The position numbers were made by a program, and so were the translations under genes. Positions 3,134-16,336 of a stretch of 64,000 nt of DNA are shown piece by piece. Numbering within the stretch: the first letter of the stretch is position 1; each line of letters starts with the position of its first letter. The DNA is taken from positions 53,444,001 through 53,508,000 of the forward strand of contig OZ260664.1 in NCBI GenBank assembly GCA_965285935.1. The letters are read 5' to 3'. This DNA comes from Ophelia neglecta. Its lineage: Eukaryota. Under the pieces are notes generated by a model that worked only from the letters and a program-made list of their open reading frames with translations, had not been told where the DNA came from and did no database searches.

Positions 3134-3242
3134 CTTAGTCGGTTGTAGTCAATCATCTTTTGTTGAGCATTGTACATCTGATCTTTTATGACGTTTATGT
3201 CTTTCTTGCATTTCTCTATTTCTATTACCCTGAGGCCTTCCA
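3134..3242 (-). CDS. PDE9A: PDE9 coding exon 7 (EGLRVIEIEKCKKDINVIKDQMYNAQQKMIDYNRL)
   Basis: tttcag|...AG|gtaggc, 109 nt, phase 1->2. Resembles PDE9A LEGLKVVEIEKCKSDIKKM. Confidence 0.94.
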
Positions 3243-3409
3243 CTGAAAGGTAAACGGCAAAATATAACTCTATTGAACATTATTGAGTGCATTTTAAAAA
3301 ATCATGTTAAAATTTAAAATGGTAAACTTTTTCAAGCCTAACGCTGAAAGTGAACAGTCAACACATATTAATCTGAAATAACAACAAAACAAGTCTTTTA
3401 ACACAAACT

Positions 3410-3469
3410 CATACACACACACATACCCTCACAAACACAAACACCCACCCACACACATACACACACACA
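3410..3469. repeat. Imperfect (CA)n microsatellite
   Basis: Read directly. Other simple repeats: (CAA)n ~445-475, (TA/TACA)n ~3780-3829, poly-C 30430-30447. Confidence 0.9.
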
Positions 3470-3619
3470 TGTACTAAATCAGAGTTTTTTCTGGTTGGGG
3501 ATGTATTACAATTGATTAAGTCGCTTGTATCGTAGTGCTACGTGGCAATACCACAAGGGCTGTTGATTCGAATCCAAGTCAAATATCACCTGAATTATCA
3601 ATAAAAATGAAAAGTGAAT

Positions 3620-3779
3620 TCAGACCACCCAAGGGACTGGATAATACTAGTCTGATCATGGAGGTGGTCTGTTTAGACAGGTTATTTTAAATTGAGAGTG
3701 TGCAGTATGGTTATGGTCTTTATTTTTGTCATTTTAATTGACAGGTGGTCTGAGGTGGTCCTTAATGCAGGTTTCGCTA
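3620..3779. mobile_element. Partial Tc1/mariner (pogo/Tigger-like) MITE
   Basis: Repeated GACCACC/GGTGGTC motifs and a right end caggtttcgct-ATA (CAGGTTTCACTG-TA-like), followed by a TA microsatellite. Left end missing. Confidence 0.5.
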
Positions 3780-4394
3780 TACATATATTTATATATATAC
3801 ATACATACATACATACATATATATATAATATTGTAAAAAGAGAAATTGATGCATCTAATGAATTATTAGGTGAAACAACTTCTTTAATTAATATAACAAC
3901 ACTGCATATGAAACCATACAGGAAACTCTTTTTTGATAGCAGTTTTTACAATAATACTGGAATTTTAATATAAGAGAAGCACCAGTTTCTAATATATATT
4001 CAAATACCAAAATTCAAGTATTATTGTACCAGCTTAGGAAGTCATTCCGGATTAGACGGTAACATTAATTATACAAAATCTAGATACACTACACGAAGCA
4101 TCCTATATGTATTTTCAATAATTTCACATTCTAAAGAAATAACGACTACCTGCAACTTCAAAATGTTCCCGACGTCTTTCGCGATGTTACCTTTTTGGCA
4201 CTAATTCACTATTGCACCGACAAACATAAAGAAGCCACTTGACAAACTTCTACTAAAAATGACGGCACTCTCGTTAACATAAAGTGGACAGCGTATTGGC
4301 CAAACGCTAAAAAAGCAAGCGACTGTGACGCTCCTAGCGGGATATGTCCTAAAACTACACCTTGTAGATATAGGCGCACATCGCTTTTACTTAC

Positions 4395-4465
4395 ATTCTA
4401 CTTTCTTTTCCAGCGCTGTTAATCGCTTATGAATATCTTTCTGCACCTCATCCACTTTGAATGCT
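4395..4465 (-). CDS. PDE9A: PDE9 alternative exon 6B (AFKVDEVQKDIHKRLTALEKKVE)
   Basis: ttccag|...T|gtaagt, 71 nt, phase 2->1. Resembles PDE9A [23 protein letters not shown]. Confidence 0.92.
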
Positions 4466-4523
4466 CTGGAACAGATCACACCACAACATTAGATCATATT
4501 TTCCGGTAGATTTGCTAACTTAC

Positions 4524-4594
4524 TTTCTAATTTTCTCTCCAGTTGGTGAACGCGTGCATGCAGACCGGTCTGTACTTCTTCTACCTTGAATGCC
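4524..4594 (-). CDS. PDE9A: PDE9 alternative exon 6A (AFKVEEVQTGLHARVHQLERKLE)
   Basis: aacag|...A|gtaagt, 71 nt, phase 2->1, open frame. Upstream TACTAAT branch-like motif (+4622-4628). Paralogue of exon 6B. Confidence 0.85.
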
Positions 4595-4962
4595 CTGTTA
4601 TCGCCAGCGATCAATCAACACATTAGTAAAGAGAATTAAACATGAATACATCAAATCATTACATAGTCTATATTTTCTAGAAGAAACTTGCTTTAAACAA
4701 ACATATCTAGTTCTAATAATGATAAAATAACAATAGCTCTATATTAACTCATCATGGGAACTTAATAATCTAAGACAAAACAAATCAAAATTCCTGACTA
4801 TATATATATATATATTAGTTTTAATTAAAAAATAAACACATAAAGACCAAAGTGTGCATTCAGCTCTAAAATGTTGCTATTTAAGTGTATTTTGTGTATA
4901 TCTGACTACTTTTGTTGCTCTTTGTGTAGGTTAAGAGTGCTTTGAAATTCCACACACTAAGG

Positions 4963-7228: not shown

Positions 7229-7283
7229 TTGTTGAATTGTTCAGCAACCTGTGTCAGCACAGTATGAAGAATTTCGTGTTCTC
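7229..7283 (-). CDS. PDE9A: PDE9 coding exon 5 (EHEILHTVLTQVAEQFNK)
   Basis: aaacag|...AA|gtaagt, 55 nt, phase 1->2. Resembles PDE9A EREELIQSVLAQVAEQFSR. Confidence 0.93.
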
Positions 7284-10319: not shown

Positions 10320-10397
10320 TGTGGTGTGTTATTGGGCATCGAAGGAGAAACCGTCACCAGAGCGCCTTCTTTATCTTTTAGAGTCACATGACTGAAT
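10320..10397 (-). CDS. PDE9A: PDE9 coding exon 3 (FSHVTLKDKEGALVTVSPSMPNNTPQ)
   Basis: ttccag|...CA|gtacgt, 78 nt, phase 2->2. Resembles PDE9A [26 protein letters not shown]. Confidence 0.92.
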
Positions 10398-11227
10398 CTG
10401 GAATGGAAGTAAAAATGAATAATACGAGCGAGAAAAAGCCATTCGCCATGTATATAACCATGCACATGTATGTGTTATAGCTTTTTAATCACTCACTATT
10501 TGTTGCCTATAATTTGAGGTTGAATGGCTGTGTAGTATATATTATTTTAGGTCTTTTGAAGTTGTCTTTTCTTTAGTTTATGGATAAGGATGCACTGCAG
10601 ATGTAAAGTCGTGAATTGCCTATGACATGTATATGTTGGAGCAAAATGAAGATTCTAATGACGTACAAAGGTTTACAAAGATTGACGGATACAGGCCAAG
10701 CTGCCCACGTAATTATAGATCATTATAAAAGGTGCTACAGTGCACCTGAGCTGTGAAGTTGGCCATAGAACGTTCCCACATTGGTCGATAAACTCTTCGT
10801 TTGTCAATGGTTGCATTAGCAGCTCATTGTCCATTTTAGTTCATATTAAATTCATTTCTGCTTATTTTCTAAAGCGTAAATAGACCCGACATCTTTTCTT
10901 TTCGTATCATATTAACACAATTAGATAACACCCGGGGTGGGTATTGTCACAGAGGTAGTTATAGGTCATGCTGTGTTCAGCAAAGTATGTTGTTTAGCCA
11001 TTCCGCAAAAGGACTAGAATGAGGCCAGTCGAGCATCGTTCTATTCTGCGACAATTCTAATCCCTAGCAGGATTCTCATTTTAATCTGGGAAGATTGATG
11101 GACGTTCCAATTGATTTCAGCGATCAGCAAAATTCACATGTGTTTGTAGGGGGCTTCTACAGTAAAACGGACTATGCATTATTAAACCTATAATTAACTA
11201 CTTGGTCATCTTAAAAGAAAAACTCAC

Positions 11228-11298
11228 TTGTTTACACCGGCAGCTTGAGCCAGAAGTTCTACAATGTCACGCGAACTGCAGTGTTTGCTAAATACAAT
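11228..11298 (-). CDS. PDE9A: PDE9 coding exon 2 (IVFSKHCSSRDIVELLAQAAGVNK)
   Basis: tttcag|...AA|gtgagt, 71 nt, phase 0->2. Resembles PDE9A [24 protein letters not shown]. Confidence 0.93.
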
Positions 11299-11385
11299 CT
11301 GAAATAAATATCAAAATGTTTAGACATACAATCTGAAATGAATCCCAAAATGATTTGTTTATACAATCTGGAATAAATATTTAAA
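11292..11385. repeat. 3 x 34-35-bp tandem repeat overlapping the PDE9 exon 2 acceptor
   Basis: atacaatctg(a/g)aat starts at 11292, 11326 and 11361. Confidence 0.85.
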
Positions 11386-14300: not shown

Positions 14301-16267
14301 CAATATCGCACCTTCCTTGTATTGCCTTACCGCGCACATAACAGTAACGTAGGGGTCTGAACGAAGTGCACTGATAATTAATAATATATATCGGAATATA
14401 ATTGCAGCCATTACCACCAGTATAAGATCTACTCATATCCTGGCCAATCGGTGCACAGACTACTCACACCTTTCAAAGATATGTTCCGAATATGATCACC
14501 TGCATCAGCAATCTCAGTCGTAGCTGATTAAGTGGGTGAATAGAAACCAAAATTAAACATTACCAATGGGTTAATATTGAATTAGGATTTAGATGAGTTC
14601 TGAAATGTAAAGGGAGGTTATGATAACGGAAGAATATCATGTCATTCTATAAAATTATACAATTACCCCAAGGCACTGCTCGACGGGGAAACAGGATATA
14701 ATAACTGCTTACTATACATTATATCATTTGGTTTATGTGCTACACAATTGCTTGCTGATTAATAAATATAATACAAGCGAACACAATATGCTTATTGCTC
14801 ATGTCAGCATTCGCGTGCATATATGCATTACCTCATGTTTTCCCAAAAACTGACATTAAATATTTTTATATATATATTTATGACATTCACACTTCAAGTT
14901 CGGTTAATGTAAAATTGAGTCGTCACCCACCGAAATAGTCATCATGTCGTATCTGCTTTAATAAGAACTTTGGTAAATTTGTGTCGTTGAGGTAGGGTAG
15001 TGAAATTATATTTGCGTCTCTGCACGGAAACTCTGGTGCGAGTAAATGTTGCAGAAAATTTTCTCCTTTGTAAAGAAAAAGTCTACTGGTTTCAAAAGTA
15101 TAAACGTGTGGCATACAAAATGCACTTCCTGAATCAATCTGCACAGTCGAAAGTGACACGTCCAATTTTTAACATTTTCAAGCTTGATATATTATATAGT
15201 TATTTATTTACTGGCGGGTAAAGTTCGTCTACAACAAACACCCGTGTTTAACATGTGTAACTGAACGTTCCACACCCTACACTGTACAATAAGTAAATCA
15301 GACGTTTCAGATATCACAAAGCAATTAAGTTAGAGAGAACTGCATAAAACAGCAACCGTCATAAGTGCAAGTATGCGTAAGTATGGTATTTCATTATACT
15401 CGGAGTAATTCCAATCGAGTAAGTTATTAGTAGGGCATGAGAAAACGTGCATGTGGATACATTCGTCATATATAAATTCATTTTCTAAGATGAGAGATTA
15501 AGTTTCTGTAATAATGAAGCAAAATTCCAGTTTATAAAAAGACGAATATTTCGTGAACAAGCAATGGATGATAAGTAGGAATTATCGTACACATCGTTAT
15601 GTAAAATAGCATCTTAATAGGATTTAAAATTGCTCTAAGCTCCTATAGGTGTCGAATTCTAAATTAATAACAAGTTACTTCTCTATCTAGTACATTAGTG
15701 ACCCATTTATGCCTGGAAATAAAGGCCTACTTAGGCCTATACTAGGCCCTACCTGTCCGTTATAATATAATAGGATATGTGTAATATTCTCATTGTGTTC
15801 ATATGACCATTTTTATATGTTATTATTATATATGTATTGTGTCTCTAAGTTTTCACTGTATGTACTTGATCATAAAATTGTAACTCCTCGGAAAGCGGGA
15901 GATAAATAAAGTTTAGAAGATCTTGGGAATTGGCTCGAACTTGGGATGATGAAATCATTCGGCGTTGTGAATTGAATTAGGCCTACTATTAAATTAGCGC
16001 ATCATTGATGATATATTATGACACTAATTCGGAATCCCTGGCCACTAAAAATGACAAGTTTGTCCTTTTGTACACCATTCCAATTGAAACGACGACATCC
16101 TTACAAGTGCGTCATCACTACTTCCGGAACTCGCATAATTGACAGCCTATCCAAGTGGATAAATTTGATAGCTAACAAGAAGCGGAGTCTCGCCACATAT
16201 CTTTAAAGATCACCAACTGAAAATTATAAATATAATAAGAAATACTGAAATTGTTCTATAATCTTAC

Positions 16268-16336
16268 CTTTTCCTCTTTTCCCCCAATTTCCACATAAAT
16301 TATTCTGGAGGTATCAAGCGACGAGCCGTTACCCAT
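16268..16336 (-). CDS. PDE9A: PDE9 coding exon 1 (MGNGSSLDTSRIIYVEIGGKEEK)
   Basis: ATG at 16336, 69 nt, donor AAG|GTAAGA. Matches the recalled vertebrate PDE9A N-terminus [23 protein letters not shown] in length and motif; the MGxxxS myristoylation consensus is retained. Confidence 0.93.

Follow-up and report, generated by a model that had tools for sequence, protein, structure and literature searches.

The window, i.e. the whole stretch of 64,000 nt of Ophelia neglecta DNA that was analysed, carries on its minus strand a gene that is, by its protein matches, PDE9. Within this gene lie two adjacent, similar exons of 71 nt each (cassette exons 6A and 6B). Among cGMP phosphodiesterases, PDE9 has the highest affinity, and it is a drug target. 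To our knowledge, no function has been assigned to its N-terminal half.

Just outside the window, past its start, the same strand carries exons of the PDEase_I domain (PF00233). Two catalytic exons matched human PDE9A with an E-value of ~1e-23, compared with ~1e-8 for PDE5, PDE10 and PDE4. The PDE9 N-terminal region was collinear with the orthologues of Capitella, Owenia and Biomphalaria in tblastn searches, and the exon downstream of the cassette aligned to residues 131–152 of the 533-residue human PDE9A2 chain. Based on an exon-by-exon tblastn with the PDE9 proteins of these three genera, the whole gene was mapped, beginning with the initial Met at 16336 and ending ~8.6 kb past the window start. 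The nearest orthologues by summed exon scores were those of the annelids Capitella and Owenia. Apart from the cassette, the following exons were placed in the window:

16265–16336, minus strand: first coding exon of PDE9 (tblastn; 3' boundary approximate)
11227–11301, minus strand: exon of the PDE9 N-terminal domain (tblastn and open frame; boundaries approximate)
10320–10397, minus strand: exon of the PDE9 N-terminal domain (tblastn; AG before, GTACGT after)
7229–7283, minus strand: exon upstream of the cassette, 55 nt (tblastn)
3134–3242, minus strand: exon downstream of the cassette, 109 nt; continues the helix that starts in the cassette; single copy in the genome
1234–1291, minus strand: following PDE9 exon, 58 nt; its phase fits the exon at 3134–3242

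The borders facing the cassette, i.e. the upstream end at 7229 and the downstream start at 3242, are those proposed in an earlier note on this DNA. The exon at 10320–10397 ends with two bases of a codon, so one more small exon is needed before 7283. It was not located between 10320 and 7283, and a candidate at ~8150 had no splice sites. The predicted protein starts with Met-Gly-Asn-Gly-Ser-Ser (16319–16336, minus strand), as in most PDE9 orthologues. This start matches the N-myristoylation consensus.

The cassette region comprises four features:

4524–4594, minus strand: cassette exon 6A, 71 nt, AG before and GTAAGT after; weak polypyrimidine tract
4466–4523, minus strand: spacer intron between 6A and 6B, 58 nt, the shortest intron of the gene
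4488–4492, minus strand: CTAAT, a branch-point-like motif read from the sequence; putative branch point
4395–4465, minus strand: cassette exon 6B, 71 nt, AG before and GTAAGT after; polypyrimidine tract better than that of 6A

The earlier note had described two adjacent, open 71-nt exons of equal phase with AG and GTAAGT borders, and both were seen at these positions. Their layout is the same: one base, 23 codons and one base in the same frame, without stops. The open frames (4614–4492 and 4488–4390) belong to one shared frame. At the upstream junction, the final AA of the preceding exon and the first base of either cassette form a Lys codon. At the downstream junction, the first bases of the next exon (TG) complete a Met codon with 6A and a Leu codon with 6B. 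The two cassettes share 43 of 71 nt (61%) and 13 of 23 amino acids. With 58 nt vs ~330 nt, the spacer is more than five times shorter than the next-shortest PDE9 intron in the exon layout by tblastn. The A of CTAAT (4489) is located 34 nt from the donor of 6A and 23 nt from the acceptor of 6B, and the motif is the sole branch-point-like one in the spacer. It overlaps the single in-frame TAA of the spacer (4491–4489).

The best explanation, which we hold to be probable, is that 6A and 6B are a mutually exclusive pair of paralogous PDE9 exons. A conserved 71-nt exon was duplicated in tandem long ago, and both copies have been under purifying selection.

The age of the pair can be read from its surroundings: the intron flanks of 6A and 6B could not be aligned, and beyond the exons only AG and GTAAGT correspond. 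Hence, the duplication is old. Identity at the three codon positions was 74/74/39%. The dN/dS calculation suggested in the earlier note gave a dN of 0.35 and a dS of 2.85, which is saturated and comes from 23 codons only. Glu6, Arg14, Glu19 and Glu23 are near-invariant in a 36-species PDE9 alignment, and both cassettes retain all four.

A cassette profile was built from the cassettes of 13 other animals plus 6A and 6B. With this profile, 6A scored 58.7 and 6B 65.4, everything else on both strands of the 64 kb scored <22, and the cassettes of single-copy orthologues scored 59–69. When 6A and 6B were left out of the profile, they scored 53.7 and 61.6, and bona fide single-copy cassettes scored 57–70. 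In a neutral simulation with 28 substitutions in either exon, 39% of the replicates stayed open, and none of 100,000 reached the family-profile score of the other copy in either direction. Taken together, dN/dS, simulations and invariant residues mean that both copies were maintained as coding sequence. On this evidence, 6A and 6B are old paralogues whose coding sequence was preserved over most of their history, and the selection on both copies that the earlier note had suspected is borne out.

This preservation is an argument against a relic, i.e. the explanation that one copy, likelier 6A, is no longer spliced in and that 6B is constitutive. Although third positions are nearly randomised between the copies, 6A has kept its frame, the AG, the complete GTAAGT and all family-invariant residues. 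What speaks for a relic is that the acceptor context of 6A is weaker (poor polypyrimidine tract), that its score with the reduced profile is lower than that of 6B and that it carries a segregating Val-to-Ala change (4574). Moreover, a single cassette is sufficient in Capitella, Owenia, Dimorphilus, Lottia and Lineus. We consider a relic unlikely, because 6A is also of a sequence type that works elsewhere: it shares 17 of 23 residues with the only cassette of another annelid-like PDE9 locus (see below). Given this and the constraint, any loss of use could only be a very recent event.

The single cassette of these five species was found in scans of the genomic loci; it is 71 nt long and keeps its AG/GT borders. 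Lowering the thresholds revealed no relic of a second cassette in the species with one copy. One cassette type was seen in every vertebrate PDE9A protein retrieved, in line with the single copy assumed in the earlier note, and 6B is closer to this type than 6A. A second cassette type was absent from the 90% clusters inspected, which covered oysters, abalone, scallops, mussels, Lineus and Lingula.

A metagenome search with a 63-residue catalytic exon returned 80 loci (L022–L101). About 70 of these contigs encode animal PDE9 catalytic exons with 74–87% identity to the present gene, and three genomic ones reach the cassette, with one copy each. The contigs appear to be host or eukaryote DNA or RNA in metagenome and metatranscriptome assemblies. 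Four of them (L082 and L085–L087) are intron-less and transcript-like.

The sole cassette of the metagenome-derived, annelid-like loci L068 and L071 is the one that shares 17 of 23 residues with 6A. The corresponding values of 6A are 14 of 23 for Capitella and 13 of 23 for 6B. 6B in turn shares 14 of 23 residues with each of the sole cassettes of Dimorphilus and L047. The cassettes of L068, Dimorphilus and L047 are necessarily used because they are single-copy. As 6A and 6B are each nearer to the sole cassette of another locus, each represents a cassette sequence that functions on its own in another species. There are two possible histories of the pair. Either the duplication is older than these lineages and copies were lost later, or it is lineage-specific and the sequences then converged. 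Both histories are compatible with the 23 residues available.

A more far-reaching version, which we regard as distinctly unlikely, assumes two old annelid types of linker helix, one represented by 6A, Capitella and L068 and the other by 6B, Dimorphilus and L047. Most lineages would have kept one type and the present lineage both, as a regulated switch. Combined with a second exon pair in the catalytic domain (see below), this would give four PDE9 forms differing in partner or dimer pairing and in catalytic surface. If this were true, cell-type-specific cGMP compartments could be formed from a single gene.

In local translations of the exon combinations, the upstream exon joined to 6A or to 6B and then to the downstream exon gave an open product. 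Joining both cassettes led to a stop inside 6B, and skipping both led to a frameshift into a stop. Because 71 is not a multiple of 3, both or neither shift the frame into early stops. Retention of the spacer would give a phase-preserving exon of 200 nt, which is blocked by the in-frame TAA at 4491–4489. An in-frame PDE9 mRNA thus allows exactly one cassette, and the mutually exclusive architecture put forward in the earlier note agrees with this. The same stops make it very improbable that 6A and 6B are constitutive together, or form one 200-nt exon with the spacer, and so lengthen the helix, even though 200 and 71 are congruent modulo 3 and both exons are in one genomic frame.

Besides the frame, the spacer itself may enforce a mutually exclusive choice. 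With 58 nt, and with CTAAT 34 nt from the 6A donor, it is probably too short to be spliced. Judging from the minimal intron geometry in other animals, 6A could then not be joined to 6B. Any 6A–6B product would be a target of nonsense-mediated decay. Neither inverted repeats nor an unusually stable RNA fold were detected around 6A and 6B (fold z = −0.07), so a docking/selector mechanism is not supported. In this respect, the pair differs from Dscam, as no docking/selector RNA pairing was found.

Classical mutually exclusive exon pairs from tandem duplication are enforced either by an intron that is too short (alpha-tropomyosin exons 2/3) or by the reading frame together with nonsense-mediated decay. 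6A and 6B resemble the classical pairs in many ways: they are homologous and adjacent, equal in length and phase, their length is not a multiple of 3, the spacer is very short and a branch-point-like motif lies near the upstream donor. They differ from them in that exclusivity is deduced here from the sequence. Such tandem pairs are a well-known phenomenon, and the conceptual advance is therefore modest. The pair would represent a fairly ordinary kind of alternative splicing, with the use of either exon being predicted from sequence features.

The probability of a chance resemblance or an assembly artefact is negligible, as the profile found only two matches in the window and a six-frame search of the 762-Mb genome found cassette matches at 6A and 6B only, as independently assembled read-derived contigs cover both exons in the same order and as the copies are only 61% identical, whereas a misassembled duplicate would be near-identical.

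The read-derived contigs originate from three public data sets of one sample. All are genomic DNA, collinear with the introns and without splice joints. It is because they span both exons collinearly that the pair is not an artefact of the assembly. The segregating change at 4574 appeared in these contigs as a heterozygous A>G (plus strand), which turns Val7 of 6A into Ala. It was the sole exonic difference among 17 over the 4.2 kb compared, and we give it no weight either way. An intronic part (3523–3804) had a contig word depth of 26,000–150,000 vs ~10–30 elsewhere, with many loose ends, which marks a very high-copy genome repeat. Simple repeats are located at 3398–3475, 3774–3832 and 4765–4827.

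A long alpha-helix joining the beta-rich N-terminal domain to the catalytic domain is predicted to begin with the 23 residues of the cassette. This is based on an AlphaFold2 model of the Owenia orthologue, calculated as a monomer only from a 36-sequence alignment. The model showed a confident beta-rich N-terminal domain (residues 10–81, pLDDT ~86–91), a helix at 90–107 over the exon preceding the cassette and a 54-residue helix at 110–163, which begins with the cassette and runs through the next exon (pLDDT 50–73). There is good support for a long, amphipathic linker helix.

In the heptads of the cassette and the next exon, 59% of the a/d positions were hydrophobic, compared with 46% in shuffles (P ~0.05, both isoforms alike). 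Searches of the PDB with the 23-residue cassettes gave chance matches only, and no solved structure was detectably similar over the segment. The heptads point weakly to the coiled-coil or dimerisation role that the earlier note had proposed for the cassette.

Core changes between 6A and 6B are conservative (Leu/Ile, Val/Leu and Leu/Val). At exposed positions, charged residues are more frequent in 6B, and Gly10 and an extra His (His16) occur in 6A. As the core is kept and the cassettes differ mostly at exposed helix positions, the switch would affect the linker helix, in its surface or its stability, rather than the catalytic core. An either/or switch in the helix between the N-terminal and catalytic domains would point to the functional importance of this helix and would provide a natural pair of variants for comparison.

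A swap of the same exon is annotated in freshwater snails. The PDE9A-like RefSeq isoforms of Biomphalaria glabrata fall into two sets (X5/X3/X7 and X6/X2/X8) that differ in the cassette only. X5 and X6 have 512 aa each and are identical except for a 24-residue stretch (residues 106–129). In the genome of Physella acuta, two intact 71-nt cassette copies were found ~2.3 kb apart. The upstream copy of Physella (L017:57467–57535) is intact and absent from the six RefSeq isoforms listed; it is either used alternatively without being annotated or conserved without being used.

The snail pairs and the present pair have in common that the homologous 71-nt exon is present in tandem and in the same phase; each annotated snail isoform uses one copy. 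In contrast to the Ophelia pair, the distance of ~2.3 kb in Physella means that no steric block is possible there. Moreover, the upstream copy in the gastropods is far more diverged. The two duplications are probably independent because the other gastropods, the annelids and the nemertean sampled have one copy. An independent duplication of the same exon strengthens the case for the importance of the helix.

The earlier note had considered the pair to be undescribed. This holds for the searchable literature, in which no paper on PDE9 with mutually exclusive exons, a coiled coil or a tandem exon duplication was found. It does not hold for databases, since the RefSeq isoforms of Biomphalaria already annotate the cassette swap; a published account of the swap was not found beyond this database annotation. 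The pair is thus less novel than first claimed.

Vertebrate PDE9A has many isoforms produced by skipping N-terminal exons. The same N-terminal region of the same family is diversified by splicing in both cases, and the exon borders around the cassette are conserved. The difference is that the vertebrate variants result from skipped exons, with one cassette type in the proteins retrieved. In one protein (P0017), the exon preceding the cassette is missing.

A second tandem pair was found in the same gene, ~4.5–5.4 kb beyond the window start and thus outside the window (L013:5369–5482 and L013:4610–4723, both minus strand). Its exons are 114 nt long with AG/GT borders, and the spacer between them is 645 nt. 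Both encode the catalytic helix with the metal-binding motif Leu-Ala-Thr-Asp-Met. The copies are 59% identical at the nucleotide level, with codon-position identities of 66/74/37%. The pair was also found in Capitella, Owenia, Dimorphilus and Lineus, and RefSeq lists the two forms as alternative isoforms in oysters, scallops and mussels. In Physella and Lottia, one copy of the 114-nt exon was found.

Like 6A and 6B, the 114-nt exons are a tandem duplication, but they are far older and more widely distributed, occurring in annelids, a nemertean and bivalves. As the exon length is divisible by 3 and the spacer is long, neither the frame nor steric hindrance enforces exclusivity of this pair. It may represent an old alternative catalytic exon of lophotrochozoans and might be of greater interest than 6A and 6B. 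Together, the linker switch and the alternative catalytic exon would mean that invertebrate PDE9 was diversified by exon duplication and vertebrate PDE9 by exon skipping.

In one Capitella teleta model (P0172, 551 residues; L015:13546–13882), both 114-nt copies are present in series. This is probably an annotation error, which could arise because 114 is divisible by 3.
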